DNA from: Schizochytrium sp. TIO01
Taxonomy: Eukaryota > Protista > Bigyra: Labyrinthulomycetes
DNA length: 64,000 nucleotides
Assembly (NCBI GenBank): GCA_004764695.1
Contig: SMSO01000004.1
Location: 310,001-374,000 of the forward strand
Direction of reading: 5' to 3'
Below, piece after piece: positions 8,322 through 59,100 of this stretch; position 1 is the stretch's first letter; each line of letters starts with the position of its first letter. The notes under the pieces were generated by a model, which was given only the letters and a program-made list of their open reading frames with translations, made no database searches and was not told where the DNA came from. Made by a program: the position numbers and the translations under genes.

Positions 8322-8482
8322 AAGTTAACTCTGGTTTAGGAAATAGCAGCTTCGGGTCTGGTGGAATGGCTAGCAAACCTGCAGGGTGGGCACGGGCTGC
8401 GAAAGAAAAGGTAAAAGGTATGAGTAACCGTACTAACAAGAAGAATGAGATCTCCCCGACAAGGGTAGAAGATATGTTGTAA
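2810..8482 (+). CDS. Giant type I membrane/surface protein, copy A (~1,890 aa): signal peptide, PAN/Apple-like and Cys-rich modules, beta-sandwich repeats, S/T-rich beta-hairpin region, single TM, short cytosolic tail
   Basis: Uninterrupted ORF, first ATG at 2810. N-terminal hydrophobic stretch RLLLVSIALLLSCYDSYA. PAN-like CRRICQQTDDCVAFVFN..C. Cys-rich CYPCERGYYC. TTTTDEYGNF (carboxypeptidase-regulatory/SdrD-like beta domain). TM AGIAVGVIVGSLLVIGAAVFAW followed by KR. Confidence 0.85.
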   Translation: MSTNQTYRIIRLLLVSIALLLSCYDSYAININLPNLVNDYMNATIGCVYQGSIGNRGSAIQLGTASNASECSQSCTSRWLSSQLRGVIVTGIRDGETFTASFGSTFQSDSSVDDIFTTCVSLVGDESCTTTYDVFVSNGNVLTDVVINKAEITAVTLSPCPEYTITDGSGVIFQDLSGATIPYLRQLDMGVLENATTFTISGGFSSYACTAYTNGQSSESYKGCLSWVYDPSANTCTLYNDAVDGADTWTYATDTEQPIFGNAVCESLEKDVQGFVATMEATKGCVLPNANIPYEDVATPTTTSDFHECRRICQQTDDCVAFVFNEETSLCWPKSPEAMNNYAEKSVTATGTAYCSTCQTGYYFRFIASLTDSCYPCERGYYCSNNVRYQCTAGDYCIERLLEQPETYGGNNVCPDSRTGVACQHHVCQMSSTGQALLQQSFQEPEDFDYATYQADSIVSTQVLDEESWTLSFDTVIKTGVLPDTMEYMVVEARQTQGTSYSVLDSMRTPVPNSLECPTITYEVTGLAQNELQPGTEVVVCATASWTSNAKPTSWFNLTSETTDTKEVASSCYTLDIQLVTKLSIDLSNIHGSISVGAVVVTYSLDDSSEIKSLTLDADGEYETILQGHSTITIHSATKSGVNTNITYCALGDTCSESQVSVFPQTISLNHLENTNIYLKDVNGRVISGTIDYPNLMQKTNVTNCPVYNATVSVVTTSAGIVIDTTTTDEYGNFQLAVQNGTTTSLVIDYYEHSFTGNDANSKSLLTGVLVQDDISGISFSDSAVPVVTFNTGATLCNYDIGDVKISISSSSPNCPGETSVTAESATTEFQLSGDSFTYSLEYIDNPDFQESFDAISMHTFSVLDGDIEINAQYQPVPELTVSFPDAALDFDDCGSTLPFDVMLEGRQNTSVTVRGFQTFNKQTCYSLPSNTTLHVVSDLALEWGEYGCIEDADCTASFNRVADTYSSRSSIATMYLMVGDPKAPQQTGTGIDPTSITRTVTFRVENDQIWNSDDEATAKALTTETGVLVIGITSLESNGGVSFPSEDSVPLYYLYAPPMTSEDSVASVSFTGSFSTETTTYAEVVNENDVGASVEVSAEAGFWFVHTSVTTSTSVDSVSTNVESLDDRVSTSTDETTYTFETTSAGEDLVLFMGTVADLTEAVDLSFDQSTCTVAAENTMTWGAEVSTLTVYSRSACERDLATANRFIRLYKNDVSRADQVQNMRFQRDNWQSLLSHWDNDKRAAQNYPVDLSSAGGSGASGNTLTVSGASVSFSETLSNENSAVTDYDCASGSDTYSASVTASANVDAFFVKASGSATVSGSFSRSYTRELKTTEGNAVDVTRSVTFNTGNELNQLTMNAYRSPHSQSYVFDVTSGQTMCPHVPGTTQIENFSLDYKEKPASLLSSDSGSFAFDIIPLIPSGLDLDLDLVISVDSASATGNIAYTIGSATVNQPFYVSVGDTQTVYVYFERLDSRIRSSTVLMQVASQCDDNIVKTISFKLTWDSPCVDVEWDGDLTNLTSSWFLTNESPELTLAYTQEGSSETGDDNKIESTVEVWGLPYEDSVTVATTEWINLGTFASGSRELTLNAGTASFPDDGRYVLELRRSCSGGSMGFLGATKSSQRLGIFDTASPEVLSWISPKTVSTAVSALQAMTFRFNEPIDCSSSDLSANISRTSGNTVVLGEVGISCSSSLTDVSVVLMLSSEAEMTAWSMSQVTIGLYGVEDLHGNAYKSSAGDPYLERTFVLPSLPLPASGSTAVGSGVPSATKMASMVSSVREALIPSGQAIKSTYIETGDESDDNSGLSKGAKAGIAVGVIVGSLLVIGAAVFAWKRYQVNSGLGNSSFGSGGMASKPAGWARAAKEKVKGMSNRTNKKNEISPTRVEDML

Positions 8483-21414: not shown

Positions 21415-21518
21415 GGGATCGGAGTCAGCTATCAGATTTTACTTTGAGTTCTAACAGCCATGGTGTTAATACAATGACATCTGGGAAAAAAAGTAAACAT
21501 GTTGAAGACATGTTATAA
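15903..21518 (+). CDS. Giant type I membrane/surface protein, copy B (~1,871 aa), paralog of 2810-8482 with a different cytosolic tail
   Basis: Uninterrupted ORF, first ATG at 15903. About 26 aa differences from copy A up to the TM (manual count). Tail is unrelated except for the terminal VEDML. Confidence 0.85.
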   Translation: MSTNQTYRIIRLLLVSIALLLSCYDSYAININLPNLVNDYMNATIGCVYQGSIGNRGSAIQLGTASNASECSQSCTSRWLSSQLRGVIVTGIRDGETFTASFGSTFQSDSSVDDIFTTCVSLVGDESCTTTYDVFVSNGNVLTDVVINKAEITAVTLSPCPEYTITDGSGVIFQDLSGATIPYLRQLDMGVLENATTFTISGGFSSYACTAYTNGQSSESYKGCLSWVYDPSANTCTLYNDAVDGADTWTYATDTEQPIFGNAVCESLEKDVQGFVATMEATKGCVLPNVNIPYEEVATPTTTSDFHECRRICQQTDDCVAFVFNEETSLCSPQSAEAMNNYAEKSNTATGTAYCSTCQTGYYFRFIASSTDSCYPCERGYYCSNNLRYKCTAGDYCIERLLEQPETYGGNNVCPDSRTGVACQHHVCQMSSTGQALLQQSFQEPEDFDYTSYQADSIVSTQVLDEESWTLSFDTVIKTGVLPDTMEYMVVEARQTQGTSYSVLDSMRTPVPDSLECPTITYEVTGLAQNELQPGTEVVVCATASWTSNAKPTSWFNLTSETTDTKEVASSCYTLDIQLVTKLSIDLSNIHGSISVGAVVVTYSLDDSSEIKSLTLDADGEYETILQGHSTITIHSATKSGVSTNITYCALGDTCSESQVSVFPQTISLNHLENTNIYLKDVNGRVISGTIDYPNLMQKTNVTNCPVYNATVSVVTTSAGIVIDTTTTDEYGNFQLAVQKGTTTSLVIDYYEHSFTGNDANSKSLLTGVLVQDDISGISFSDSTVPVVTFNTGATLCNYDIGDVKISISSSSPNCPGETSVTAESATTEFQLSGDSFTYSLEYIDNPDFQESFDAISMHTFSVLDGDIEINAQYQPVPELTVSFPDAALDFDDCGSTLPFDVMLEGRQNTSVAVRGFQTFNKQTCYSLPSNTTLHVVSDLALEWGEYGCIEDADCTASFNRVANTYSSRSSIATMYLMVGDPKAPQQTGTGIDPTSITRTVTFRVENDQIWNSDDEATAKALTTETGVLVIGITSLESNGGVSFPSEDSVPLYYLYAPPMTSEDSVASVSFTGSFSTETTTYAEVVNENDVGASVEVSAEAGFWFVHTSVTTSTSVDSVSTNVESLDDRVSTSTDETTYTFETTSAGEDLVLFMGTVADLTEAVDLSFDQSTCTVAAENTMTWGAEVSTLTVYSRSACERDLATANRFIRLYKNDVSRADQVQNMRFQRDNWQSLLSHWDNDKRAAQNYPVDLSSAGGSGASGNTLTVSGASVSFSETLSNENSAVTDYDCASGSDTYSASVTASANVDAFFVKASGSATVSGSFSRSYTRELKTTEGNAVDVTRSVTFNTGNELNQLTMNAYRSPHSQSYVFDVTSGQTMCPHVPGTTQIENFSLDYKEKPASLLSSDSGSFAFDIIPLIPSGLDLDLDLVISVDPGSASENISYTIGSATVNQPFNVSVGDTQTIYVYFERLDSRIRSSTVLMQVASQCDDNIVKTISFKLTWDSPCVDVEWDGDLTNLTSSWFLTNESPELTLAYTQEGSSETGDDNKIESTVEVWGLPYEDSVTVATTEWINLGTFASGSRELTLNAGTASFPDDGRYVLELRRSCSGGSMGFLGATKSSQRLGIFDTASPEVLSWISPKTVSTAVSALQAMTFRFNEPIDCSSSDLSANISRTSGNTVVLGEVGISCSSSLTDVSVVLMLSSEAEMTAWSMSQVTIGLFGVEDLHGNAYKSSAGDSYLERTFVLPSLPLPASGSTAVGSGVPSATKMASMVSSVREALIPSGQAIKSTYIETGDESDDNSGLSKGAKAGIAVGVIVGSLLVIGAAVFAWKRYRDRSQLSDFTLSSNSHGVNTMTSGKKSKHVEDML

Positions 21519-39216: not shown

Positions 39217-41148
39217 ATGCAGCAGCAACTCCGTCGCGGCGCCCAGACCCTGGCCGGACGCGGTGCCTTTCTTGGCAAGAGCTCCAAAAATCTCAACAAG
39301 CAGCTCCTGCAGATTCAGTCACCCTGCTCAATTCGTGGATTCCGCAGCTCTGCAGCGGTCTTGAACAACGAAGAAATCGAATACGTCGCATGGGAAGAGG
39401 CTGGTCACAGACTGCTTGAGAACCCAATTTATAACAAAAGCACGGCATTTGATGAGGAGGAGCGCAGGGCCCTCGGCCTTCGTGGTCTACTCCCACCACA
39501 TGTGGAGACCCTTGAGCAGCAGCTCGACCGCGCATATGCGTCTTACAAATCCAAGACAACCGATTTGGAGAAGCACATTATGCTCCGTCAGCTGCAGGAC
39601 ACGAATGAGGTCATGTTCTACGCTTTGCTGTCCCGCCACATTTCAGAGATGATGCCCATCGTCTACACCCCCACCGTTGGCCTCGCCGCCATCAAGTTTA
39701 GCCAGATCTGGCGTCGTCCTCGTGGAATTTTTATCTCATACCCGCTCCGGGCACAGATGCGCGATATGTTTAAGAACCTTATTGCTCGTGGTCACACTGG
39801 TGCTCCCGTAGATGTCGATACGCGTCTCAATGTCAGCACAATTGTGGTAACCGACGGAAGCCGCATCCTCGGTCTTGGCGACCTCGGAGCTAACGGCCAA
39901 AGTATTCCTATCGGTAAGTGCTCGTTGTACACGGCAATTGGAGGCATCCCCGGACCCGAAACCCTTCCAGTATTCCTTGACGTCGGAACCGACAACGAGG
40001 CTATCCTCAACCAGCCCAGTTACATCGGCTGGCGTAACAAGCGTCTTCGTGGCGAGGAGTATTTTAAGTTTATCGACCAGTTTGTGAATTGCGTTAAGGA
40101 GTTCTTTCCCAACGCTCTTCTCCAGTGGGAGGATTTCGATATCCAATCTGCATCGCCTATCCTGAAAAAATACCGCAACGAGCTTTGTACTTTCAATGAT
40201 GATATCCAGGGAACCGCTACCATTGTTCTTGCGACACTCCTGGCTGCTTGCAAACAGACCAACATCTCGCTCAAGGACCGCGATATCGTTATGGTTGGTG
40301 CAGGAAGCGCTGGTTGTGGTATCGCTGAAATGATTAAGAAGGGTATGGTCCGCGAAGGTCTCACTGAAGAAGAGGCTCGAAGCCGAATTTACATGGTCGA
40401 TCGCTATGGTCTTGTGCATGACGGACAAGAAAACCTTCTTCCCTTCCAGCGCGATCTCGCAACCCCACTCGCAGAGTGCAGCAACTGGCGTGGTGGCGAG
40501 GATGGCCAGTACAGCCTTGTGGACGTGATCAAGAACGTTAAACCCTCTGTCATGATCGGAGTCACCGGTATGCCAGGACTCTTTACAGAAGATGCTGTCC
40601 GCGCTATGGCCGCAGGTTGTGCCCGCCCTGTTATCTTCCCTCTCAGTAACCCGACTCATCGTGCTGAGGGTACCCCTGCTGACATGATGGCATGGAGTGA
40701 TAACCGTGCTGTTGTGGCGACTGGCACTCAGTTTGAGCCCACTGAGGTTGTTATTGCTCGCACCAAGTATACTCGCACACTCAAGACCTTTGTACACTCT
40801 ATGGCCAACAACTCTTGGATTTTCCCTGCAATTGGCCTTGCCTGCAAGGTCGTTGGCGCCACCCGTGTGACCGATGAAATGCTCATGGTTGCCGCACAGT
40901 CTCTGGCTGAGTGCAGCCCTGGTCGTAACGGCGACCAGGATGCCCCACTCCTCCCACCTAATGAAGAGCTTGTGAACGTTACCAAATATATTGCTACTCG
41001 CGTCTGCCAGGAGTGTATTCGCGAAGGCCACGCCTCTAAGAATGGTGAGGATGGTGACTTTGAGCGTCTCAAGAAGATTGTGGATTCGACGTTCTGGCAC
41101 CCCAAGTACAAGCGCGTCGAAATCGACTCTGCCATGTGGACTAGGTAA
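39217..41148 (+). CDS. maeA: Malic enzyme (malate dehydrogenase, decarboxylating), SfcA/MaeA-like, with predicted mitochondrial presequence
   Basis: MMPIVYTPTVG, VVTDGSRILGLGDLG, IPIGK, LQWEDF, FNDDIQGT, GAGSAGCGIA, IFPLSNPT. Arg-rich, acid-free N-terminus. Strong C-ending codon bias. Confidence 0.95.
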   Translation: MQQQLRRGAQTLAGRGAFLGKSSKNLNKQLLQIQSPCSIRGFRSSAAVLNNEEIEYVAWEEAGHRLLENPIYNKSTAFDEEERRALGLRGLLPPHVETLEQQLDRAYASYKSKTTDLEKHIMLRQLQDTNEVMFYALLSRHISEMMPIVYTPTVGLAAIKFSQIWRRPRGIFISYPLRAQMRDMFKNLIARGHTGAPVDVDTRLNVSTIVVTDGSRILGLGDLGANGQSIPIGKCSLYTAIGGIPGPETLPVFLDVGTDNEAILNQPSYIGWRNKRLRGEEYFKFIDQFVNCVKEFFPNALLQWEDFDIQSASPILKKYRNELCTFNDDIQGTATIVLATLLAACKQTNISLKDRDIVMVGAGSAGCGIAEMIKKGMVREGLTEEEARSRIYMVDRYGLVHDGQENLLPFQRDLATPLAECSNWRGGEDGQYSLVDVIKNVKPSVMIGVTGMPGLFTEDAVRAMAAGCARPVIFPLSNPTHRAEGTPADMMAWSDNRAVVATGTQFEPTEVVIARTKYTRTLKTFVHSMANNSWIFPAIGLACKVVGATRVTDEMLMVAAQSLAECSPGRNGDQDAPLLPPNEELVNVTKYIATRVCQECIREGHASKNGEDGDFERLKKIVDSTFWHPKYKRVEIDSAMWTR

Positions 41149-43066: not shown

Positions 43067-43968
43067 ATGCCACGCGCTGAGATTGCTACGGAGAAGCGGC
43101 ACAAGAAGCCGCCCGGGTACTGTTGGTACTGCTGGTGGTGCATCAATAATGAACATTCTTGGATGTTTGGGGTTCCCATCCTCAATCTTGTTTTCACGCT
43201 TGTGCTTCTTGGTATCTTCGTTGCGTTTCGGCAGATCACAGTGTCAGTAGACGGAACGACGTACTATTTTGATATCTTTAGCCCGAGCTTTGACAGCCTC
43301 TTTGAGTTCACGTACTATGGAAATTGCTCCGTAGTCAGCGATGACATCATGGTCGCCCTCAAGGCGGCACCGTCATGGCAAATCTCCTCCATTTTTTACG
43401 TCCTTTTTCTTATATTTGGTATTTTAATGAGCTGTCCTCTCATTTGGCTCGCCAATGCAGAGGTTCAAGGTAATATTGACGTCCAATCGTTTGAGCCTGG
43501 CCACCGCTATGCACTGATTGTCTATTCTTCTGTGTACCTTTTCGTCTATATTATAATTCTTGTCGTAAGTTTGACTCAATCAATACGTGAGCAAATGCTC
43601 AACACTACTGTCCTTTGCTCATTCCAACAAACGAAAACGTTGTACTAACACAGCTGCATAATCTCTCTCTGCCTCCGCCTGTTGCGCAAAATTGCTTCTT
43701 TGTTTAGATTGGAGGAAATGCTTCATATCCGTATTGGTGGGGTTGCTTTGATGAGGTGGACTCTCTCCTTGCCTCTGTTGACAGCTCTGCGAGCTCATCT
43801 CTCGAGGGTGCCCAGTACCCAATGATTGCCAATTGGGCGATCGACTGGGCTACCATGGTGCTGGCTTTGATTCTTACCGTTGTCTTTCTTTTTGTTCTAG
43901 GCAAACCAAGGCCGTTCTATGACCCAATTGCATGGGATCCACAGTACGAGCTTTCCCGAGGAGGATAG
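43067..43968 (+). CDS. Uncharacterised ~4-TM membrane protein, 2 exons: 43067-43564 and 43708-43968 (~252 aa)
   Basis: Donor GTAAGT at 43565, TACTAAC at 43643, acceptor TTTGTTTAG ending 43707. The phase-0 join links hydrophobic ORFs 43067 and 43756. Confidence 0.7.
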
Positions 43969-44441
43969 AAAAGGTTTGTCTAGAGCTATTTTATGCAGAT
44001 ATACATATATATGCCTAGTCTCAGATGCCCAGAAAATAAATTTGTCATCCGTGACTGCGGACCGACTCAACTAGATTTACTACAAGGCGCTATCTCCAAT
44101 GGTAAAATGCTAGATCCTTTCCCATTTCTAATTAGAACGGGGGGAAAATGAGATTTATTGCTAATATCTCGAGGAAACCCGTTCTTCATTTGCATGGAAG
44201 TTCAACACTTCGTACCCTATTCTCAATATGTTTTAAATTCTTTGCATCATTTCAAATCCTATGAATTTTGCATAAAGACCTAATTCTTGATATATATTTT
44301 TTACCGCGCACCTTGGCAACGCATCCTTAACTCAACCCGAAGAGCCCAAACAACAGAACAGAAATATAGTGGTGTTAAAATTAGGAACTGTGTTTTACAA
44401 ATAGAGCAGAAATGACTACTTTCGAATCGTATTTCTGACCA

Positions 44442-47400
44442 TCAGAGATCATCTTCATCGATATGATGGACCGACTCGGATTCACTCGAAGGCTGCTGCC
44501 GCGACACAGGTGGGGGAGGGGGTGCCCTCCGCTGGGCAAGTTGAAGAACAGACAGCATTTGACCAGTTGCAGCATTGTAGTAGTATCCGTCGCCTGCTGC
44601 GCGCCAAAATGAACTTGGAGCAAACTGACGAGGAAATTGTGGATTAGGCTCATCTGAAGAGCCACGAGGAATCTCGGCCCATGAAATACGACGAGAGAGG
44701 TTATGTGATAACCGCGTCCGATCACGCATACGAACTGCCGCAGGTACGCGCTCCATGGTAGTTTGATATGCCGGACGTCTAGGGTGTTTCGGGATATCAG
44801 CCTCAGAGTAGTCGTCGAACCCTGAGATTCTTTTCTGAGGCTTGGACATTTCCTCAAATGCAGCCTGCTCTTCGGCCGCAGCTTCTACCAGCTCATCCTT
44901 GAGTTCAAGGAAAGAAAGAGCAGTTACACGATGGTACATGTCAACTTTTCTCCAGTACACAAGCAATCTCATAAAGCGAGTGAGTCTCACAATCATTGCA
45001 AGAATAATTTGTGTAATGAGGCTTCCTTCTGAAGCAAAGACTTGAGACGTAAGAGCGAGGTCTGCAACTGACAAGAAGCCCAAGAAGGCATCTCGAGAGC
45101 CATACCATGTACAATCAAGTTTGCCATCGAGAGTTATAGGGATAAGGAAGAAGAGTTGCAAAAAGAAGTACAGGCCGTACAATATTGAAATGGAAACCGA
45201 AGCCACAATTACACCTGGCTCAAGTTTTGGAACTTCTGCTCCACAAATATACATCGTACTGAAAAAGTCCGAAAGAAAAAGCAAAAGGGCCATGTTACGA
45301 TCAAGTATAAATGCGACCACTGGATGTTGAAGGAATGAAAGTCGGCTGCCTCGCGTAACAGACTCCTCCGAAAACTCCGAATGTGGTCCTTTCGGTGTCC
45401 CCTCGCTTACAATGTGATCAACTCGATTTTGCGAGAGGTTGAAATCTGAAACATGAGGCAAGGGGCTTGGTGTAAGGCTTACAGTACCAGTTCTAGGGGT
45501 ACGAGGGTTCCGGGTAGTCAGAGGGGTTGAGTAAGTAGACAACTTAGCTGCTGTTTCGCTACGTTTCATCGTCGGCGTTTGTGCTTCAAGCATAGTTCCC
45601 ATAGTATTGTTCTTTGGTGTTGCCAACAAGCGTCGACGCGAGCCTTCATCAAAAACTAAAGCAATATTGGATGGCCTCATTCGCGTCTCGTCATCCACTG
45701 TGCGTCGTTTAACACGGTCTCCACGCTTACGTACGTATCGAATGTAAAAGTCTGCAGCGCTAAGACCTCGAAAGACCATTACAAAGATCATAAGCACAAG
45801 GATGCACATGTATTCGTCTCGATTGTCATAAGAAAGGCTCCTTAAAATCACGTCGCCAGTCCGGGATGCCTTTTCAAGTGTCGTAAGGTCACTACCTGCA
45901 AAAAGTTGAACGCCTGCAAGGTCATTAATAAGGGTCGCTACAAAAGACCAATAAGTGACCATAATATAGGGAATCCATTGTAGGTATGTCGGCAAGTCGC
46001 TTAATCTTACAATGAAACCATTAAATAGTGCACCAAGACCAAGGAGCCCAATCTCTAACATTGCTGCAATGCGCACGTTGTCACGGTCAATTTCGATAAG
46101 TACATTCTGGCATAAGACGACGAGTGAGGTCAGCGCCATGGTCAGTAAGAAAATGCCGAACCGCTCTGGGTCCGGGTTCAATCCGCCAATCCAATATACT
46201 GGAATAGAAAAGGCAAGGGCTTCGAGTGTGGAGCTTACTGCATCACGCATAAACTGGCTCAACAAAAAGGCAATCCATGAGCGAAAGGTACCAGCATCTG
46301 CTTCATAATCATACATACGTTTCTCACCAAGGTAGCGGTCGCCAAGAAATGTACCTTCAATGAATGTCATGGTCGCCACTGTCAAATACGCCAGTGCTGT
46401 ACGAGAGCTGTACGTGTTTACATCTACAAATATGACTCCTACTAAAACACCTCCGCCCAACGAAAGTAGTGTCGTTGTGGTAATTTCAAAGCCCCCGCGA
46501 AGAATCGATCGCGAAAGATGTACCCACGCCAACGTGGCTGCTGACGACGACTCAGACCATGACCAGCGTCCCTCTGCAAGGGAGTTTTCCACAAGAATCT
46601 CCTTGAGGTCTTTTAGCATTGCCGGGGTCAACTCAGCTGTTTCGTACTCCATTTCCTCTTGTACAGCTTCTCCTAAAGCTCCCTGCTCATATGCATATTC
46701 GAAATTATGAACATGCTCATCCGAGCAAGTCTGCAGCATATCAAGAATATCGTTAGCGACGTTCGTAGCGGCTGGCGAGATACCAAAGTGCCTTGGTGCT
46801 TCTCTTGCCTCACCGGAAAATACAACTCGCCCACTAACAAGAAAACTAAGACGGTCAAAGTACTCAAATATTTCGCGGCGTGGTTGATGAATCGTCATAA
46901 TAACATTCACGCTTGCTTCGTGAGCCATAACATGCAGAGATTTTATCAGTAACAGTGCATTTGTGGAATCCAATCCTGATGTCGGTTCATCAAGTAGAAG
47001 GACTGCTGGCATTTTAAGTAATTGAGTGGCAACAGACACACGCCGTCGCTGTCCACCCGAGATACCTCCCTCCACAGTGACGCCTCCGTCGCCACAAATT
47101 GTGTCAGCACATTCTCTAAGCTCCAGTAGCCTCATTACTTGCCAGACGCGCCGTAGCTTCGCTTCTGCTGTCATGTATTGAGGGAGCATCATCCAAGCTG
47201 CGTGGACGAGGTGCTCGCGAACAGTCAGGCGAGGGAAAATGACATCAGCCTGCCTTACATAGCTGGTGTTATGACGAAGCCACTGTCTTAAGAATTTGCA
47301 GGATGGCGAGTCTGATGCAACGCCATTTATGTAATGACCTCCTGAAATTGATCCCATATCTCTTGTGAGAGCTAGAATATCAAGCAGCGTCGATTTGCCA

Positions 47401-49331
47401 CTGCCAGAGGGCCCCATGATGGCATGTACCATACCAGGGGCAAATGCTAGACTCACATCTTCCAAGATTTTGTAAGGCTTATCCCGACGAGATCTTGGGA
47501 GAGCCCAATAGGATAGGTACTTGACCATGAGATGGATTCTGCGATACTCTGTACTGCTTGCCTCGTTTAAAAGCTGTTGTTGGACTTCCTTAATACCTTC
47601 TTCATGATCATCACTTTCAACCAGCTTTACGCGTCTCCAATACGCATCAACTGTTCGTCGAAAGCGCCGTACCTGATGGTAACTTAAGCCAAAGGCAACG
47701 TGAAAAATCAAAAGAGTCATTGCTCCGTAAAACAACACCATATACTGTACGCAATGACTCAGGGATGACGCAACAGAGAGCGCTTCAACCTTGGTCAGGC
47801 ATTTTTCATTACACAAGAATGAACCGCATGAGTCTTGAAGAACATTTAAAGGTGTAGAAAGTGCAACACCCGAAGCTGTTTCCGAAATCCCGCCTGTACC
47901 ATTTAAAGCAATGAAGCTTTTCACAGCAGTGCGCACACTAAGCCCATCAATGGCGACGTTTTCCCAGACTTCATAATCGCGTTGAAAGGTGATTGTCCCA
48001 AAGTCTTCGATAGTCTCAACACGTTCTGTGATTCGATGCAATGATGTTGGAACAATGTACCCATGTTGCGCACAGGCCGTGACAAAAAAGTAATGGCTTG
48101 CGGCAATGCCGCGCAGGTCAACCGCATCAAGCACATCTGCCCGAACCATATCGCCATATGTCTCGATATAGATGCTTGCAGCAGATGCGAAAGATGCTGA
48201 ATCGTAATACGAATCGCGTTTCGTAGCATTAAGCAGACCAAGGAGCTCAAGCTGGATTAGATCATACCGACTTTGAATAAACAATAACTTTTCATTCCCT
48301 ACGTCTTGCAAGAGCTCATAAGGTAGAAAGCACCGCCAACGCAAGTCGCGCTCACTCGTGCCTCCAACCCTGGTCAGACAGTCAGCGTTAAAAGCGGCGC
48401 CATCTATCCAATCTTCAGTTTGTTTACGAAACAGATTCTCCACTAGATAAATATCGTCAGGAACGGCTGTATCTGGAGAAAATCCTTCAGTATTGAAAAA
48501 CCAAGGTGAGTCAAGCACAGCAAAGAGATCACGTTCACGTCCTGTATCTGTTGGGTCAAATTCATCATGAATGGCTTCTAAATCGTCTCGAATCCTATTG
48601 ATGAGGTTCATGACAGCAATAGCCCCCCCACGGGTCCCTCCAAAAATGACCCTGCTGGCCAATGTGAGATTATAGTTATATGTTAGCTCCATAAGTACAT
48701 TACGAAGGACACGTTGGCCTCGGTGTCTTTCGTTAGAGCCTGTCCCGTTCCCTAACCACCAATCGAGAGTGCAGGAAGGTATGAAAACTCTCCTGAATTT
48801 AGCAATGTCGTTGTCGTCGGGGCACAATATGGTTTGCGGCGTTACACGAGGATACGTATTCCACCAGTCGCTTGTACATATGACTCGTGAGTACAGACAT
48901 TGAGCTAACTCTTCTGAAATCTCACCACTTGTCAAAGTGTACAAAGCGTTGTCTCCAAAAAAGTCTTTGTTGGAATAGCCGTCACAGACTGTGTCGTCAT
49001 TATTTGCTCCCTTCACTGTGCCATTGCACAGCTCATCGCATTGGTTTCCAGAGCAGAGCTCCGAGTCTCCGAGCCATATAATATAATCTGCAGCGCCATC
49101 CTCATTAACAGAGTCTGATTCACCAAAATAAAAACCGTACTGTGATCCATCAGCGCAGCTTGCGTTCTCCGAATAATAATAAGACGACGACTCATACAGC
49201 GTTGTATTGAAGTCAGAATCACTTTCATATAGAACCAACTGTTGTGATGCTGTGCATTTTGTGCCTTGCGTTCGCTGTGTTGTGCCCGCGAGCCATATTC
49301 CCACAATCACAAAGCTTAGACTCCACCTCAT
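44442..49331 (-). CDS. Multidomain fusion: signal peptide + pectinacetylesterase/Notum-like (pseudo)hydrolase + TM + ABCG half-transporter (NBD-TMD) + voltage-sensor-like 4-TM domain
   Basis: Single 1,629-aa ORF. Hydrolase motifs ASCADGS, RVFIPSCTLDWWLG, RHRGQRVL, LDSPWF, FIQSRYD, CAQH. ABC motifs GPSGSGKST, YVRQ, ISGGQRRRVS, LLLDEPTSGLDS, TIHQP. ABC2 TMD. S4-like IVRLTRFMRLLVYWRK. Confidence 0.88.
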   Translation of the reverse strand: MRWSLSFVIVGIWLAGTTQRTQGTKCTASQQLVLYESDSDFNTTLYESSSYYYSENASCADGSQYGFYFGESDSVNEDGAADYIIWLGDSELCSGNQCDELCNGTVKGANNDDTVCDGYSNKDFFGDNALYTLTSGEISEELAQCLYSRVICTSDWWNTYPRVTPQTILCPDDNDIAKFRRVFIPSCTLDWWLGNGTGSNERHRGQRVLRNVLMELTYNYNLTLASRVIFGGTRGGAIAVMNLINRIRDDLEAIHDEFDPTDTGRERDLFAVLDSPWFFNTEGFSPDTAVPDDIYLVENLFRKQTEDWIDGAAFNADCLTRVGGTSERDLRWRCFLPYELLQDVGNEKLLFIQSRYDLIQLELLGLLNATKRDSYYDSASFASAASIYIETYGDMVRADVLDAVDLRGIAASHYFFVTACAQHGYIVPTSLHRITERVETIEDFGTITFQRDYEVWENVAIDGLSVRTAVKSFIALNGTGGISETASGVALSTPLNVLQDSCGSFLCNEKCLTKVEALSVASSLSHCVQYMVLFYGAMTLLIFHVAFGLSYHQVRRFRRTVDAYWRRVKLVESDDHEEGIKEVQQQLLNEASSTEYRRIHLMVKYLSYWALPRSRRDKPYKILEDVSLAFAPGMVHAIMGPSGSGKSTLLDILALTRDMGSISGGHYINGVASDSPSCKFLRQWLRHNTSYVRQADVIFPRLTVREHLVHAAWMMLPQYMTAEAKLRRVWQVMRLLELRECADTICGDGGVTVEGGISGGQRRRVSVATQLLKMPAVLLLDEPTSGLDSTNALLLIKSLHVMAHEASVNVIMTIHQPRREIFEYFDRLSFLVSGRVVFSGEAREAPRHFGISPAATNVANDILDMLQTCSDEHVHNFEYAYEQGALGEAVQEEMEYETAELTPAMLKDLKEILVENSLAEGRWSWSESSSAATLAWVHLSRSILRGGFEITTTTLLSLGGGVLVGVIFVDVNTYSSRTALAYLTVATMTFIEGTFLGDRYLGEKRMYDYEADAGTFRSWIAFLLSQFMRDAVSSTLEALAFSIPVYWIGGLNPDPERFGIFLLTMALTSLVVLCQNVLIEIDRDNVRIAAMLEIGLLGLGALFNGFIVRLSDLPTYLQWIPYIMVTYWSFVATLINDLAGVQLFAGSDLTTLEKASRTGDVILRSLSYDNRDEYMCILVLMIFVMVFRGLSAADFYIRYVRKRGDRVKRRTVDDETRMRPSNIALVFDEGSRRRLLATPKNNTMGTMLEAQTPTMKRSETAAKLSTYSTPLTTRNPRTPRTGTVSLTPSPLPHVSDFNLSQNRVDHIVSEGTPKGPHSEFSEESVTRGSRLSFLQHPVVAFILDRNMALLLFLSDFFSTMYICGAEVPKLEPGVIVASVSISILYGLYFFLQLFFLIPITLDGKLDCTWYGSRDAFLGFLSVADLALTSQVFASEGSLITQIILAMIVRLTRFMRLLVYWRKVDMYHRVTALSFLELKDELVEAAAEEQAAFEEMSKPQKRISGFDDYSEADIPKHPRRPAYQTTMERVPAAVRMRDRTRLSHNLSRRISWAEIPRGSSDEPNPQFPRQFAPSSFWRAAGDGYYYNAATGQMLSVLQLAQRRAPPPPPVSRQQPSSESESVHHIDEDDL

Positions 49332-49519
49332 TGCCTCGTCGAAATCTATTTGCTACAAATTCTGTGTTTTCCTTCTACAGTCGAACCTCTATTCCATAGA
49401 TAATCAGCGTTATCGCGTCTCTCTCAAAACAGTAGCACTCCTGGATCACCCTAACAAAAGCATCTAAGCCGCTCGCGTTTGGCAGTACTTGACAACGTTT
49501 GTCTCCAGGAGCATACGTT

Positions 49520-49880
49520 CTTCAAGTTCAAGCTTTGCCAACTCCAACACCCAAGCCGTCGCTACTAGAGCTGAGAGTTCTTCCACTCTCAATGACGGCC
49601 TTCGTGGGACCGACACTCCAAAATCCGTACTGCAAGTTCGAGAATTGCTTTTGAAGTGCTCTGGAGTAACCTCTAGCCTGTCCGCGGTTTCATATTGCCA
49701 GGTTTGCCACATTTCGATTGAAGTACTTCAACACCCTTTGCTGTGCGAATTGAATCGCTCATCAACATTACAATCCGTCAATGGGGGTATTCTGTAACAT
49801 ATTGCAAAATTTACATCACCATATTCCATATAACTCAAATCGTCAAGTTTGGACAGAGCTTCATGTAAATCCCAAAGTGC
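49520..49880 (-). pseudogene. Possible decayed protein kinase pseudogene
   Basis: Across frameshifts the minus strand reads SYMEYGDV, TAKGVEVLQSK..GNMKPR and TDFGVS in kinase subdomain V-VIa-VIb-VII order. Confidence 0.35.
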
Positions 49881-51518: not shown

Positions 51519-54500
51519 ATGCCGCGGAATAGCAAGACGAAAGCATGGGACCTGCCCAGAGTTCTTTCCAATTTTTACAAAGTCTATGCCCCGGAGAAAA
51601 TCGATGATGTGGATCGAGTTATTGCCCATTTTCAGGGCCGAGAAGATGACCTTATTGAGACGCTCGAGGACAAATACTCAGTGGCATTCAATCGTGACGG
51701 ATCCTTCGAAGATGTCATTCTTGAAGATGAGGATGATGACACACGGAACCCTGGTCTCGGAGACGAACTTGATGGCGAAGAAGAAGACGAGTCCTACACA
51801 TACGCAACGGACTCTGACGAAGAGGATCGTACCATTTCAGACGAGAGCTATGACTCAGATGAATTTGAACCGGACCCTGAACTCAAAGAAGAGTTGGAGT
51901 TTTCTATGAAGTCAGAAAAAGCGAAGGCTGCAGACTTTGCTCGGGCTGCAGCCGCTGTTATTGCAGCCAGACAACCACGGCAGCGCACTATTACAGAAAC
52001 ACTTGAAGACAATACCCGCAAATCAAAAAGTCGAAGCGTCTCGCACTCAGTCCGAAGTAGCAGACGGAACGTGCGAGCTTCCTCCAAACTCCGAAGAGCA
52101 TCCAAAGTTTCAACGTCGAGTCATTCCTCAAAATCGCGACGGCCTTCGCTTCACAAGTCTACGAGTAAAATGAGTCGTAGAAGTAGTGTGAGCAAGAAGG
52201 GCCTTAAAGCTAATCGTGACTTTGGATTTGTCGAGGTTGGTATCTCTGTTGCCGAGAAAGCAAAGTATCTAAGCAAGACTGGAACTGAAGTGTGGATTCG
52301 AGATGCTGACGAAGCTTGGATTTCTGGTGTAGTTGCTAATTCCAAAGCCGATGGGGAGGTGAGCGTTAAGATTAGCAACGGTCGTCGTAGCCAAGTCTTG
52401 TCTGTAGAACCTGACGACGTGGAGCCAGTCTTGGAACCCACTTCAAGCCTATACAAGGTAGACGATCTCACAAAGCTCAAAGCACTGCACGAACCTTCGC
52501 TTCTACAAGCTTTGCAAGAGCGATTTGCGCGTGATTCCATTTATACCTATACTGGACCAATTTTACTGGCCGTCAACCCTTTTAAGCCTCTTAACATTTA
52601 TGGCGAGGCAGTTGCTTCTCAATACACGGAGTCCAGTAAAGGCTTCACATCAAAAGGCTCCAGACTCAAACCAGTCGACCTGCCTCCTCACGTTTATAAG
52701 CTTGCTGACGATGCTTATCGTGCACTCATCGAGCGTGGTGGACGCAACCAGAGTATCCTTGTTAGCGGTGAGTCTGGCGCCGGCAAGACAGAAACTGTCA
52801 AAATTGTTCTAAATTACCTATCTTATGTAAGTTCCTTTGGACGCAAGCTTGGCAAGGTATACGCTGCAGATCGTGTTTTACGAGCGAATCCAGTATTAGA
52901 ATCCTTTGGTAATGCCAAAACACTACGCAATGACAACTCTTCTAGGTTTGGCAAATTTATTCAAGTTCAATTCGACGAGAATAAAGGTGACCTGAAAGGT
53001 GCATACATAGAGACATACCTTCTTGAAAAGGCGCGTGTTGTTCACCAAGCTAAAGGAGAAAGAAACTATCATATATTTTATGAGTTAGCAGCGGGAGCTA
53101 GTTCTGAGCAAAGGCGGCGTTGGAACTTTCCAAAGTCTCTCAAGTCTTGCCGATACACATGTCAAAGCGGAACAATGAAGCGATCAGATATTGATGATCT
53201 TGCTCAATTTCAAACAACAGTTGGAGCTATGGAAGTTCTCAACTTCTCACCTTCTGATGTTGAGCGGATTTTTCGATGCGTCGTTGCGGTGTTGCATCTC
53301 GGAAACATCGATTTCGACGAGACCATCAATAAGGAGGGACTTTCAGCGGCGTTTGTAGTCAATCCGGAGGAGTCCACTGAGCTTGCCTCCGAATTGCTCG
53401 GCATTGACGCGGGCCACTTGGAAGAAGTTCTCACCACGCGCATCATCAACATTTCTGGAAGCGAAAGTATGGTCAAGCCTATGAGTATGATTGAGGCAGA
53501 AGATGCTCGCGATGCGCTCGCTATGAACCTATATGAACGTGTCTTTGGGTGGGTTGTTTGGCGTACAAACCTAAGTATTGGCATGGATGATAAACAATAC
53601 GAGGCTATGCTCGCTCGGCAAGAACAGCAGCGACAGTACCTTGAACGAGCTCGGCGCCGCGGTGAAGAAGAGGATTTGGAAGAACTCGCTGCTGCTGGTC
53701 CTGTCCCAGCGGAAATCACCTCTGTAGGTGCCTCCCTTTCAATGAATCCATTTCGTATCAGCATTAATAAAGCATTTGCGCATGCTTTGCGAGTTTCTGG
53801 TCTCGCACGGCAATCAGACAGCGATCGTGAGCCTGCACATGACTATCTTATTGGCTGTCTCGACATCTTTGGATTTGAAGTCTTTCAAACAAACTCATTT
53901 GAACAGCTTTGCATCAACTACACGAACGAGCAACTTCAGCATCAGTTTAACGAGTTCGTGTTTCAGTATGAGCAAGAAGAGTATGTACGTGAGGGTATCG
54001 ACTGGACATTTGTCACATTTCCTGATAATGCAGAGTGCATATCCATGATCGAATCAAAACCAATTGGACTTCTCTCTCTAATTGACGAGGAGTGCTTATG
54101 GCCAAAGGGTACAGATGCCTCGCTTTGGGCCAAGCTGGAAACCAATCTTCCCAAAAAGTTCCCCGATCACTTTCTTATCACACGCTTTGATAGAGCAAAC
54201 TCGTCATTTACTATCCGTCATTTCGCAGGGGATGTATCATACTGTGTCACTGGATTTTGCATCAAAAATAAGAATGAACTACGCCAAGAAGCTGTAGATC
54301 TTATACGTTCTTCAACAGATCGCCTCGTCAGTATGTTACTACCAGCGAGTGCTGAAGCAGCAGCTGGAGGTGCTGATATGGCGGCTCATTTTGATAGCCT
54401 AATGTCTGAGAGCGGGAAGCCAACCCGACGCGCCCGAGGTGGCTCGCTCTCAGGACCTGCACCTCCTCAACGAGGCACCAAGATTCTTAAAACGACTGTA

Positions 54501-55754
54501 GGATCTAACTTCAAGAATCAACTCGCAAGTGCGATGGCAGTCATCCGTGGCAGTGACCCGCACTACATTCGATGTTTGAAACCGAATGCTGAAAATAAAC
54601 CGGGTCGTTTTGAGCGTCTCAGTATGATGAGTCAATTGCGATACTCTGGAGTGATTGAACTCGTTCGAGTTACCAAAGCTGGCTATCCAACACGGTTTTC
54701 ATTAGGCGACTTCATCGAGCGATTTGCAGTTCTTAGCTATGGTTTGCAAAAAGCAGCAAAGAAGGGCTCACAGCTTGCACAAAGTGGTAATCTCAGCGCT
54801 CAACGTGCTATGTGCAAGAAAATTTGTGATAACGTCAAAATCAAACACGGCGCGGACTATCAAATTGGGCATACAAAGATGTTTCTGCGCCAAGCTACTC
54901 TGTCATACTTGGAGATGAAGAAAGCTGAACGTACCTACGACAGTATTGTTCGAATCCAAAGGGCATTTCGTCAGTATCGAGCTGAGTTCAAGAAACGGTA
55001 TGCTGCGATTGTGATTCAGAGAAATGTCAGAGGATATCTAGTTCGTATGGAAACTGAAATTCTCTTGGAACGACGTGCACTTGCTGCTGAGATAATTCAG
55101 ACCAACCCTCATTTTCAACGCTGGCTTGATTGGGTTATGCGAAAGTCGAGAGCAGAGCGTCGCCGTCGCCGTCGTCGAGCAGTTCAGCGGCTTCCCTTTA
55201 CATGGCATACCCCGCCATGGGTGGAAAACAATAAAGATATTCTCATGTGGGTTGCGCCGGGTCTTTTCCTCTATTTTCTTCCATCCATTTTAAGATTAAT
55301 CGGCTCGGTCGTGCATAACTTCAACTTATTGCCGCTATTCGCTGCGATGCTAGCTTCAGGGATGTTTTTTGGGGGTCTGGGTATGCAACATGTAGAAGAC
55401 ATTTTGCATCATTTTCGGTCTGCGGCAATTGCAAGTGCATCTGCATCTTCTCGGAGGCATGCACGTGCAAGAAAATCAACAGCCCGTCGACGGTCTGTGG
55501 ATGATCGCTCGACCACAAGTCGTCGTAGCAGGGATCGTAAGAATAGGACCTCGTCGAGGAAGTCCCGCCGACGCGATGCTAACAGACGAGAAAATATTCG
55601 CGGTGTAGAAACCTCTGCTCGCTTCAATGCAAGAGCCACACGATTGCGTGCCGAAAAAGCCAAGTCAAAGCGCCGTTCTCAATCTTTTGAAATGTCTGCG
55701 TCAGGGGCTCGTGCACAGCCCAAATTTAGAGGTATTTATCTTTCACGGAAATGA
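51519..55754 (+). CDS. Unconventional myosin with N-terminal extension, SH3-like domain, motor, 2 IQ motifs, C-terminal hydrophobic segments and basic tail
   Basis: P-loop SGESGAGKT, switch I NDNSSRFGK, GERNYHIFY, switch II LDIFGFE, FEQLCINYTNE, PHYIRCLKPN. IQ motifs IQRAFRQY and IQRNVRGY. Confidence 0.93.
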   Translation: MPRNSKTKAWDLPRVLSNFYKVYAPEKIDDVDRVIAHFQGREDDLIETLEDKYSVAFNRDGSFEDVILEDEDDDTRNPGLGDELDGEEEDESYTYATDSDEEDRTISDESYDSDEFEPDPELKEELEFSMKSEKAKAADFARAAAAVIAARQPRQRTITETLEDNTRKSKSRSVSHSVRSSRRNVRASSKLRRASKVSTSSHSSKSRRPSLHKSTSKMSRRSSVSKKGLKANRDFGFVEVGISVAEKAKYLSKTGTEVWIRDADEAWISGVVANSKADGEVSVKISNGRRSQVLSVEPDDVEPVLEPTSSLYKVDDLTKLKALHEPSLLQALQERFARDSIYTYTGPILLAVNPFKPLNIYGEAVASQYTESSKGFTSKGSRLKPVDLPPHVYKLADDAYRALIERGGRNQSILVSGESGAGKTETVKIVLNYLSYVSSFGRKLGKVYAADRVLRANPVLESFGNAKTLRNDNSSRFGKFIQVQFDENKGDLKGAYIETYLLEKARVVHQAKGERNYHIFYELAAGASSEQRRRWNFPKSLKSCRYTCQSGTMKRSDIDDLAQFQTTVGAMEVLNFSPSDVERIFRCVVAVLHLGNIDFDETINKEGLSAAFVVNPEESTELASELLGIDAGHLEEVLTTRIINISGSESMVKPMSMIEAEDARDALAMNLYERVFGWVVWRTNLSIGMDDKQYEAMLARQEQQRQYLERARRRGEEEDLEELAAAGPVPAEITSVGASLSMNPFRISINKAFAHALRVSGLARQSDSDREPAHDYLIGCLDIFGFEVFQTNSFEQLCINYTNEQLQHQFNEFVFQYEQEEYVREGIDWTFVTFPDNAECISMIESKPIGLLSLIDEECLWPKGTDASLWAKLETNLPKKFPDHFLITRFDRANSSFTIRHFAGDVSYCVTGFCIKNKNELRQEAVDLIRSSTDRLVSMLLPASAEAAAGGADMAAHFDSLMSESGKPTRRARGGSLSGPAPPQRGTKILKTTVGSNFKNQLASAMAVIRGSDPHYIRCLKPNAENKPGRFERLSMMSQLRYSGVIELVRVTKAGYPTRFSLGDFIERFAVLSYGLQKAAKKGSQLAQSGNLSAQRAMCKKICDNVKIKHGADYQIGHTKMFLRQATLSYLEMKKAERTYDSIVRIQRAFRQYRAEFKKRYAAIVIQRNVRGYLVRMETEILLERRALAAEIIQTNPHFQRWLDWVMRKSRAERRRRRRRAVQRLPFTWHTPPWVENNKDILMWVAPGLFLYFLPSILRLIGSVVHNFNLLPLFAAMLASGMFFGGLGMQHVEDILHHFRSAAIASASASSRRHARARKSTARRRSVDDRSTTSRRSRDRKNRTSSRKSRRRDANRRENIRGVETSARFNARATRLRAEKAKSKRRSQSFEMSASGARAQPKFRGIYLSRK

Positions 55755-56168: not shown

Positions 56169-59100
56169 CTAACGACGGCGCGTTCGTGTGCTTCGAGGTT
56201 GATACACCTCCTCTTCCTCGCCATCTAGGTCTTCATCATCATCGAATTCATCTTCCTCGGAATCCACATAACCGTTTCGATGGCCATATTTGATAGCGCT
56301 CTTTGCGCGTTTTGGAGCACCTCCGCCTTTAGAGGCTGTTCTTGTGCGTTTAGTACCTCTGGAACCAGTAGATACACGTGCAGGGCGCCGGCGGTTTGAC
56401 CTTTCTCCATAATTATCGTCATCGTCATCATCTTCATCGTCAGAGTTATCGAAGTCTTCTTCCTCATCTTCGTCTTCCTCATCGTCTTCATCTTCGTCGC
56501 TTTCTGCAGCTGCGCGTCGTTTAGGCGCCTTTGCTTTGCTCTTGCTAGGGCCCTTGTCTTTGCTTGATTTTCCCCCGAACTCGGACGAATCGAGATTTGA
56601 CAAGGGCAGAGACACCCAGCTAGCCAAGCCTACTATGTCTGTCGCGACCTTCGGGATTTCTCTGTCAACCATGTTTTTCCCATTAATCGCAGCACGGTAC
56701 ACTGGCGTACCTTCCTGATTAAACAACACTGCATTGTCAAATACCAGGGTCAGATCAGCCTCATAGGCCTTCATGATAGCAACAGCAGTGGATTCGGAAA
56801 GGAGGGTATTTCTGCCAGTGGCATCATTACCATATTCACCATCCTCAAGTTTGTCTACAATTGTGCTGAAGTCCATTGGTTGGCTGATAATATCCAAATA
56901 ACCAGGAACAACAGTCGGGTCAACTGGCTCCGCAAATATTTTTTGCCGGTCTTGTTTCTTCAACTTAGCCAAGACACCGCGAAGACCTGTCATGAGAGCA
57001 GAAGAACTCACAGTATCCCCAGCTGTAGTGGCTGAAATTGTTGCACCTCCGCCCGGAAGAGCTCGCCTGCGGCGTCCATGACGACCCAAATCTTGCTCTG
57101 ACATTTGTCTATCCTTGCTTTCGATTGCATCGCCATCGCCATCGCTATCATCGCTATCATCATCATCGTCATCTCCATCATCATCAGTGGCATTACCACC
57201 ATTCTGTTGATATGATTGTTGTTGTTGCACATGGGAAATAGACGATGAGGATGAAGAACTCGCATTCCTGTTAGAATCTGTCATATCTTGCTGGGGTTGT
57301 TCCTTGGCAACTTCCTTGCGAATAACATCAAGCAAGATACGTTGGAGCTTGTCAGCATAAGCACAGATCTGCGAACGGCTATCATTGTAAATAAAGCAAT
57401 CTTGGCGAATAAGTTTGACGTCACGTTCAATGGCCTCTACGTGACGATAATAGTGGCCACGCAAGCGGTTCACAATTGTCAACATATCCATGGGAAGCGG
57501 AACCATTGTTCCATACATAGGGACAGAATGGAGATTCACTGGTTCGATAAAGGGCTGGGCACAAGGATGCTCAATTTGAATTTCATCAAACTTGCTAGCA
57601 ATGCGATTCGCAAGTCGCTTACTTACTCCATCATTTGCCGATAAATCCACGCAAAAGGCCTGTACGCGGTGCTCCTTACGAAGTTCCCATGCAGATTGAT
57701 ATTCGTCGTCATCGGCGCCAGTCTCATTCCAGCGCACACAAATTGTTTGCCAAGGTGACCCTGGCCACGAAGAATCAGAAGAGCTGATTTCCTGCACCTG
57801 GCCTGCATAGAGTACAGATTCTCCATGGGTGCCAGTATAAATCGCATACACTGTGTCTCTCGGTTTGATACTTTGCTGCATACCGGCTTCAAAACGCTCA
57901 CGTAGAAGGATAAACTCTGCATCATCAAAAGCATGATAAGTCACTTTGAATCGAGCGCGCTTTGACACAACTACCTCAGGTGGATTGGAACTCCAAAATG
58001 ACCCTTCAGGAACAGGTATTGCGCCTTGAAGAAGATGTTGTGAAGGAACAGAGACAACCGTCAACTCGAGACGAGATTCAACTCTCGGATCTTGTCCTTC
58101 ACCCACCTGCCGCTGATGTTCATCACTTGGAAAAGTGTAGTCAACTTTATCAACACGACAGAGAACGACCGGCCATGTTCTCTGCCACCAACTTGACTGC
58201 CAAGGTGCAACTTCCGAAATAGGATAGGTTCGCAGGTAATGGTGATGTCCTTGGGCGCAATAGACCACAATATCACCTACTTGAGGACAGTACGGGTCAC
58301 TGGGAATGCGACCCACAGTCTTGCGCAGCCATTCACGATCATAGAAACGAAGCACTGATACAGTGTTACTTGGTTCCTCAACAGAGCTACGTCGTCGGCT
58401 ATTGGTAGAAGGACGGCTTCCACGCTTCGCCTTCGTACTGCGTTGAGGACGTTGCGGAAGTTCCTCGTCCTCGTCCTCTTCTTCTTCATCTTCGAGATCA
58501 TCCTCATCATCTTCTTCATCTTTGGCATAAATAACATCATCCTCGTCGTCATCGTAGTAATGTGAGCTACGTCTTGTGGAGCGAGATGCACGAGCAGATC
58601 GGCGTTGCGGGAGTCGGCGTAATGCTCGGCCACTGCGTGTGCGACGAGGCTCGCCATCCTCAGAACCATTTTCCATATCATCATCTTCTTCCATAGCGTC
58701 TCCACCATTTTTGTCATCCCACTGCTCATCAGCATCATCTTCACTGTCGCTACTCAGGTTAGGTCCGCTCATTGTTGGTGGAAGATTTTCGAAATCTTCA
58801 ATACGGCGAATCTGATTCCGAGCCTGGCGAGCAGCAGCGCGACCACGACGTTGGTTCTGTCGACCAGTACCATTGCTAGCATTAGTTGCTTCGGCCTCCT
58901 CGCGTCTGTTCGCATTTTCACGCAGTTGTTGAAGTTGTTCTTGTTCCGCACGTTCGCAAGCAAGAAGGCCAGAAGAACTGTTTCCAGGTGCAGGTGCATA
59001 GCCCATTACACCACTAGATTGTGGTGCGCGCGAAGGCGCAATAGCGGTATTTGGAACATTTGTTGGCTGTCGCATGCGAACCACATCACGAGTAACTCGC

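Follow-up and report, generated by a model that had tools for sequence, protein, structure and literature searches.

An ABCG half-transporter of Schizochytrium with a Notum/pectinacetylesterase-fold ectodomain and a voltage-sensor-like four-helix module

We analysed a 64,000-nucleotide stretch of contig SMSO01000004.1 (positions 310,001 to 374,000 of the forward strand) from the genome assembly of the labyrinthulomycete Schizochytrium sp. TIO01 (GCA_004764695.1), which we call the window. Coordinates refer to this window unless another contig is named. Its gene of interest lies on the minus strand at 44442-49331. An earlier note, made from the sequence alone, had described it as a single stop-free open reading frame of 1,629 amino acids, encoding an ABCG transporter fused to an extracellular hydrolase-like domain of the Notum/pectinacetylesterase (PAE) kind and to a domain resembling a voltage sensor. 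The frame proved to be as described, with an ATG start and zero internal stop codons, and the motifs fall where the note had placed them (Walker A at residue 640, position 47414; ISGGQ at residue 757, position 47063; Walker B at residue 778; H-loop at residue 814). From N- to C-terminus, the protein consists of a signal peptide, a Notum/PAE ectodomain, an anchor helix, a nucleotide-binding domain (NBD), an ABCG-type transmembrane domain (TMD), a linker rich in S/T-P sites, a four-helix bundle, a helix that prolongs the last of these (S4), and a WW-like motif followed by polyproline. The features are as follows, with the evidence for each in brackets:

44442..49331 (stop codon included), minus strand: the whole gene, an intron-free single reading frame of 1,629 amino acids (ATG start, stop-free frame).

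49263..49331, minus strand: predicted signal peptide, residues 1-23 (hydrophobic N-terminus in the translation; the orthologs begin likewise).

47772..49262, minus strand: Notum/PAE-fold ectodomain, rich in cysteines and sequons, residues 24-520 (Pfam PAE, phmmer match to Notum, AlphaFold2 and Foldseek).

48624..48641, minus strand: nucleophile elbow GGTRGG, residues 231-236, with Arg234 at the position of Notum Ser232 (alignment to Notum GSSAGG).

47685..47741, minus strand: anchor helix TM0, leading from the ectodomain to the cytosolic NBD, residues 531-549 (hydropathy peak 1.99; helix 503-520 of the AlphaFold2 model).

46881..47465, minus strand: NBD with Walker A, Q-loop, signature, Walker B and H-loop, residues 623-817 (Pfam ABC_tran, motifs, matches to ABCG2 and ABCG1).

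45747..46508, minus strand: ABCG-type TMD, residues 942-1195 (Pfam ABC2_membrane; the ABCG1 match reaches query residue 639).

45321..45746, minus strand: cytosolic S/T-P-rich linker with a conserved NTM..ML..QTPxMK motif, residues 1196-1337 (seven [ST]P sites; identity to three orthologs 42/23/20%).

44937..45320, minus strand: family-specific, voltage-sensor-like four-helix membrane bundle, residues 1338-1465 (AlphaFold2, invariant residues, hhalign, Foldseek).

44847..44936, minus strand: long helix extending S4 into the cytosol, from the motif KVDxYHxxRAxSFL (K1462-L1475), residues 1466-1495 (AlphaFold2 helix at model residues 119-176).

44508..44612, minus strand: degenerate WW-like motif (W1576...GYYYN..TGQ) followed by PPPPP, residues 1574-1608 (ortholog identity 83/71/51%).

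The gene is covered without joints by contigs from four public runs, and in two of these runs a single contig spans it. In one run (X6) the contigs tile 44382-49700 at a depth of 2-7, again with no joints. Its depth pattern, 2-7 beside about 299, looks like that of RNA, although the RNA status of this run is a guess. An artefact of fusion or assembly, or a chance reading frame, is ruled out by the joint-free contigs and by an architecture that is kept across species and in a paralog. A separate X6 contig terminating at 44265 (window 44100-44265) has a depth of about 299, against 2-7 across the ABCG gene, and marks a very highly represented stretch downstream of the gene. The only open reading frame near it, at 43067-43648 on the plus strand (193 amino acids), has no Pfam match.

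The core of the protein is of ABCG type. Pfam ABC_tran matches residues 623-785 (E = 9.5e-26) and ABC2_membrane matches residues 942-1136 (E = 2.8e-16), both exceeding the curated cut-offs. When solved structures were searched by phmmer, ABCG2 matched over the NBD and TMD together (E = 7.5e-54); further relatives were ABCG1, aligned over nearly its full length, then CDR1/PDR5, ABCG5/8 and plant ABCG25/16. The NBD lies ahead of an ABC2-type TMD, as in ABCG proteins, and the closest relatives are themselves ABCG proteins. The complete NBD and ABC2 domain of the earlier note are therefore both present. Since the ATPase motifs are all intact–Walker A GPSGSGKS (640), YVRQ, ISGGQ (757), LLLDEP (778) and IHQP (814)–the sequence reads as that of a competent, type-I-anchored ABCG half-transporter. 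ABCG half-transporters must pair to function.

The ectodomain was matched by Pfam PAE (PF03283) at residues 174-425 with E = 2.8e-13, scoring 50.1 bits in the whole protein and 55.1 bits when the ectodomain was taken alone (cut-off 26.6), and by Notum in phmmer searches (E = 0.0015). In Foldseek, an AlphaFold2 model of residues 24-544 (pLDDT 71.7, pTM 0.80) matched Notum structures with E = 3e-16, probability 1.0 and TM-scores of 0.78-0.82 on the length of Notum, so that the AlphaFold and Foldseek check proposed for this segment returned a structural match alongside the profile match. A conserved CxDGS motif is common to the ectodomain and Notum/PAE proteins. Judging by the modelled structure, the ectodomain is a true Notum/PAE fold and a member of that family by descent. 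It holds 16 cysteines, of which many are invariant, and seven of the protein's 11 N-x-S/T sequons, which fits an extracellular or lumenal location.

The proposed fold thus stands, but the catalytic serine that a hydrolase of this family needs does not: the ectodomain lacks a Ser-Asp-His triad with its serine in G-x-S-x-G. The Notum segment G-S-S232-A-G-G aligns with G-T-R234-G-G-A, ungapped on either side of the elbow. Among 11 family members examined, the nucleophile position is arginine in ten and leucine in one. The catalytic aspartate (D357) is invariant in all 11, and the histidine is kept in seven and lost in four; the window protein has it, as His423. From these residues, the ectodomain is almost certainly not an esterase, and is a probable pseudoenzyme that most likely serves as a binding module. 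A conserved arginine at the core of the former acyl-ester site suggests a ligand whose head group is anionic (carboxylate, sulfate or phosphate, for example).

The architecture is not confined to this gene. Hondaea fermentalgiana has it, and so do at least five further full-length proteins. Among named relatives, the best is the Hondaea protein annotated "ABC transporter G family member 22" (P0002, 1,668 amino acids), with 65% identity in the alignment and the same architecture. Full-length proteins in the order PAE, ABC_tran, ABC2 and four helices are P0002, P0003, P0004, P0014, P0015 and P0018, and P0020 and P0007 are also members. A protein search with the full-length profile was dominated by generic ABC matches and added P0020 only; limited to the module region, it returned only P0001 and P0002, and a single-protein scan of metagenome contigs found no relative. 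The 2,181-residue P0007, also from H. fermentalgiana, has EF-hands and GTP cyclohydrolase II N-terminal to its PAE-ABCG four-helix part; here the gene model has probably joined two adjacent genes.

The TIO01 genome (64 Mb in 37 contigs) contains exactly two PF03283 matches, the window gene and a paralog on contig C6, and therefore has no free-standing PAE gene. The paralog (locus L044, 1940-6358, plus strand) is intact, with 1,472 amino acids from its first ATG and 40% identity over the core. It has the same series of parts–signal peptide, PAE domain (with GGTRG), transmembrane helix, NBD, ABC2 domain and four-helix module–and its S4 has only R-x-x-R and a lysine. It is without the WW-like tail.

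As the earlier note had stated, the part of the protein beyond the TMD comprises an S/T-P-rich linker, four further transmembrane helices and a tail, all evident from the translation and its hydropathy. The four hydrophobic segments lie at residues 1338-1460. An AlphaFold2 model of the module (pLDDT 85, pTM 0.74) has four antiparallel helices, at model residues 26-45, 53-76, 92-114 and 119 onward, with a small hairpin between S2 and S3, and its last helix runs about 30 residues beyond the membrane. Because the ABCG TMD ends in the cytosol, the bundle should have both termini inside (N-in/C-in), as voltage sensors do; in this predicted topology, basic residues border the cytosolic helix ends. 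The module is better conserved than its surroundings: its identity to three orthologs is 61/47/42% (61% being Hondaea), compared with the lower values of the linker given above and 37/31/9% for the tail. Residues kept family-wide are D1355 in S1; Y1385, F1389 and Q1392 in S2; P1398 and W1409 in the loop that joins S2 to S3; D1414, where S3 begins; and D1424, further along S3. S4 reads R/K1449-x-x-R1452-x-x-R1455 and is followed by K1462-V-D-x-Y-H1467. R1452 is invariant, as are K1462, V1463, H1467 and A1471 after S4.

The module is rare. In a phmmer search of 1.84 billion representative proteins there were only 13 matches to it, all of them C-termini of PAE-ABCG proteins or short sequences, and no ion channel was among them. 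The short sequences, most of which lie on small contigs (about 1-4 kb), are probably fragments. P0009 is an exception and is probably a split gene model: it has the four-helix module and a weak WW match, P0005 has the PAE domain and NBD, and the identical size of their contigs suggests that they are one gene split into two models. We considered whether the module arose by duplication of part of the ABC2 membrane domain and rejected this origin (hhalign probability at most 0.3%).

Several features of the module recall voltage sensors. It has four transmembrane helices arranged N-in/C-in, a topology that is predicted only, and S4 carries a basic residue at each third position (R1449, R1452, R1455, and then K1462). 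To compare families, we used 29 channel domains of the same genome to make a voltage-sensor profile, then broadened it to 36 sequences by adding seven loci that match Ion_trans, mostly sensor-only, and aligned it to the family alignment with hhalign. With the 36-sequence profile, local alignment gave a score of 27.5 (P = 8e-4, probability 25%) over 88 columns covering S2-S4, and global alignment gave 21.3 (P = 5e-4, probability 14%) over 151 columns; across comparisons, P ranged from 3e-4 to 9e-4. The signal rose with the broader profile. When columns were shuffled within helices and loops, none of 100 shuffles attained the observed score (local 11.8 ± 2.5, maximum 21.3; global 4.3 ± 1.7, maximum 8.9), and decoy transmembrane profiles, made from pore S5-S6 and pieces of ABC2, scored 9.5-14.4 locally and at most 7 globally. 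The alignment is collinear over S1-S4 and sets the three arginines in register with three arginines in S4 of the sensor profile. In the same register, the charge-transfer centre would be represented by Y1385 at Shaker F290, by position 1388 at E293, and by W1409...D1414 at the "WN..D" of S3 (D316). The top Foldseek match of the module was Ci-VSP (E = 0.36) and voltage-sensor domains were enriched among the top matches; the Hv1 chimera 3wkv could be aligned with model residues 16-173 (133 residues). Ion_trans clusters ranked topmost for the window module in the ESM Atlas language model (0.87, a lead only). A complex prediction for two copies of residues 1320-1500, as in an Hv1-like dimer, scored 0.00, which counts neither for nor against binding.

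A number of results weigh against descent from a voltage sensor. A Pfam scan of the C-terminal 372 residues and of six short family members, with E up to 10, detected neither Ion_trans nor another meaningful family, and none of the 86 matches in a PF00520 search of the genome lies at the module locus. The module profile gave only noise against the sequences of the Protein Data Bank, apart from a weak WW match (PRPF40A, E = 1.6). The acidic residue of S2 is missing, the E293 position being tyrosine here, glutamine in most and glutamate in one of 19 sequences compared. The paralog subfamily has lost the third arginine of S4 and keeps two. The hhalign probabilities are just 14-25%, structure searches do not separate the module from generic four-helix bundles, which outrank voltage-sensor domains, and a second family member, P0015, gave no usable match in the ESM Atlas. 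The voltage-sensor-like domain of the earlier note is sustained in its predicted N-in/C-in four-helix bundle and its RxxRxxR in S4; an Ion_trans profile match is lacking, the structural match is not distinctive, and the identity of the domain is only suggested. Several weak lines concur, each non-significant by itself, and on their agreement we consider it somewhat more likely than not that the module descended from a voltage sensor. That membrane voltage or pH actually regulates the pump is, in our estimate, doubtful.

The main competitor to descent from a voltage sensor is that the module is an accessory membrane domain particular to this lineage, with a role like that of TMD0 in assembly, trafficking or partner binding, and that RxxRxxR is an interfacial, positive-inside feature. 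This would account for the absence of an Ion_trans match at the level of HMMER, for hhalign probabilities below 30%, for a Foldseek E-value of 0.36 with generic bundles ahead of voltage-sensor domains, for the two-arginine S4 of the paralog subfamily and for the second member without a usable language-model match. It does not readily account for a collinear S1-S4 alignment that brings the arginine triplet, the aromatic residue of S2 and the aspartate of S3 into register together, nor for scores that lie 6-10 standard deviations above within-segment shuffles and at about twice those of the decoys. The enrichment of voltage-sensor domains among the top structural matches also speaks against it, as does the extension of the S4 helix into the cytosol, which is found in Hv1, TMEM266 and SLC9C1 (PMC13095418). 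We regard this accessory-domain explanation as a real possibility, though a distinctly less likely one than voltage-sensor ancestry. A further variant, in which the module is an Hv1-like proton pathway that would join an ABC pump to a proton channel for coupling to pH, is very unlikely: the module lacks the RxWRxxR signature of Hv1, and the Hv1-like gene of the same genome (L038) scores poorly against the family (hhalign probability 1.4%).

Two other readings concern the rest of the protein. The ectodomain might still be an active esterase that couples deacylation to transport, using Thr233 (serine in P0018) in a G-x-[ST]-x-G motif shifted by one residue. The sequence GGTRG admits a G-x-T-x-G reading, and its counterpart in P0018 is GGSRG; the invariant Asp357 and the presence of His423 would also suit an enzyme. 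Against this, the ungapped alignment to Notum sets Arg234 on Ser232, four of the 11 members have lost the histidine, and threonine nucleophiles are unusual in alpha/beta hydrolases. We consider activity of this kind unlikely, and keep to a non-catalytic ectodomain. The other reading is that the long frame is artefactual, representing separate genes or unspliced pre-mRNA, with a mature protein that is without one of the terminal modules. The RNA-like evidence does come from the contigs of a single run whose RNA status is guessed, but the gene is 4.9 kb in one stop-free frame, six other full-length proteins and the paralog have this architecture in one continuous chain, there are no joints in four runs and the terminal modules are clearly conserved. 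This reading is hardly credible, and we treat the protein as one continuous chain.

The linker and the tail have their own conserved spots. Among four orthologs, the invariant residues of the linker are M1244, L1248, Q1251, T1252, P1253 and M1255. These lie in the NTM..ML..QTPxMK motif (45566-45611, residues 1241-1256), which stands inside an otherwise poorly conserved segment and is a candidate site of proline-directed phosphorylation or docking. The WW-like motif with its PPPPP is the best conserved part after the NBD. Pfam WW (PF00397) has no match in the window protein, because the second tryptophan is missing, and has weak matches, below the cut-off, in P0015 (4.8e-4) and P0009 (4.5e-3). 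By its residues, this part of the tail is a degenerate WW-like motif that adjoins a potential WW/SH3 ligand on the cytosolic side.

Taking the parts together, an ABCG half-transporter with a dead-esterase ectodomain and a diverged voltage-sensor domain as a regulatory module is the reading that we favour, by a slight balance. Like other ABCG half-transporters, the protein would work as a homodimer and use ATP to export or flip a substrate that is lipid-like or amphipathic. The ectodomain, placed above the exit, would provide a non-catalytic pocket for binding, accepting or selecting the substrate. The C-terminal bundle, most likely a diverged voltage-sensor domain, may act as a regulatory module as in SLC9C1, and its state could be passed to the pump through the conserved helix after S4, by analogy with SLC9C1, whose long S4 extends into cytosolic regulatory helices (PMC13095418). 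The phosphorylatable S/T-P linker and the WW-like/polyproline tail could add cytosolic control. A bolder proposal is that this is the first ATP-driven ABC transporter with a functional built-in voltage sensor. The ABCG lipid exporter would then be gated by membrane potential, or by pH by way of an Hv1-like module, and its dead Notum pocket on the outside would receive or select the cargo; such a protein would be the primary-active equivalent of SLC9C1, restricted to labyrinthulomycete protists. We put this forward as a speculation that is more likely wrong than right.

Compared with known proteins, the core resembles ABCG2, ABCG1, ABCG5/G8 and plant ABCG25 in its NBD-then-TMD order, ATPase motifs, ABC2-type domain and expected dimers, and it differs from such half-transporters in adding a signal peptide, an ectodomain of 500 residues, an anchor helix and a C-terminal extension of 430 residues with four transmembrane helices. 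ABCG proteins with N-terminal ectodomains exist, for example yeast Adp1 (with EGF-like repeats) and Arabidopsis ABCG24 and ABCG28, in which a signal peptide, an ectodomain and an extra transmembrane helix precede the half-transporter. To our knowledge, the ectodomains of these proteins are not PAE/Notum-like, and none of them has a C-terminal four-helix module. With Notum, the Wnt palmitoleoyl-protein carboxylesterase, and the plant pectin acetylesterases (PF03283) the ectodomain shares the fold, the profile match, the conserved aspartate and CxDGS. It differs from them in having arginine for the nucleophile serine family-wide, a membrane tether, fusion to a transporter, extra cysteine-rich inserts and a juxtamembrane CxxFLCNxxC segment.

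The module is like Ci-VSP, Hv1 and TMEM266 in being an N-in/C-in four-helix bundle with an S4 arginine triplet and an S4 prolonged as a cytosolic helix. It has no significant sequence or structure score with them, and is without the RxWRxxR of Hv1 and the acidic charge-transfer residue of S2. As an extra helical membrane bundle on an ABC core, for regulation or partner binding and not for transport, it can also be compared with the TMD0 of ABCC proteins (MRP1, SUR), which in contrast is N-terminal, has five helices, is unrelated in sequence and is without periodic arginines. The closest functional analogy is the sperm Na+/H+ exchanger SLC9C1, a dimer in which a transporter is followed on the same chain by an S1-S4 module with a long S4 leading into cytosolic regulatory elements (PMC13095418). 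SLC9C1 is, however, a secondary transporter with a cyclic-nucleotide-binding domain and a clear Ion_trans-type sensor with measured gating currents, whereas the pump described here is ATP-driven and the identity of its sensor only suggested.

A 2024 review (PMC13095418) places voltage sensors in ion channels, VSP (one phosphatase family), Hv1, TMEM266 and SLC9C1 (one secondary transporter), and does not include ABC transporters. The literature that we searched yielded no fusion of PAE with ABCG and no ABC transporter bearing a module that resembles a voltage sensor. The sequences themselves are already in public databases under automatic names, and it is the reading of their architecture that is new. 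Should the module be a working sensor, primary active transport would join the processes under voltage control, and the protein would offer a compact natural fusion of sensor and pump for study. Regardless of the sensor, the family shows a pump that has taken over the Notum/PAE esterase fold as a non-catalytic part on its outer side, the form in which both PAE-fold genes of this genome occur. Docosahexaenoic acid, squalene and carotenoids are produced industrially with thraustochytrids, so that a lineage-specific exporter of lipid type with unusual regulation is of practical interest.

The searches for voltage sensors also brought up other genes of this genome. Locus L038, outside the window (C3:1845612-1845869), is an Hv1-like gene with a voltage sensor only, whose S4 (FVRLWRLLRV) is followed by a coiled-coil-like helix; these motifs suggest that the thraustochytrid possesses a voltage-gated proton channel. 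The 86 Ion_trans matches of the genome include several four-domain channels (open frames of 1,809-2,245 amino acids), a rich channel set for an osmotrophic protist.

The genes neighbouring the ABCG gene in the window are functionally unrelated to it. They are a malic enzyme (39217-41148, plus strand), a myosin (51519-55754, plus strand; motor domain E = 1e-212) and a BRWD1-like WD40/bromodomain protein (56169-61982, minus strand). Elsewhere in the window, two open reading frames of about 1,880 amino acids each (2801-8482 and 15894-21518, both plus strand) have a weak PAN-domain match at the same place, at about residues 291-352, and resemble tandem paralogs that encode a giant protein, either secreted or in the membrane.

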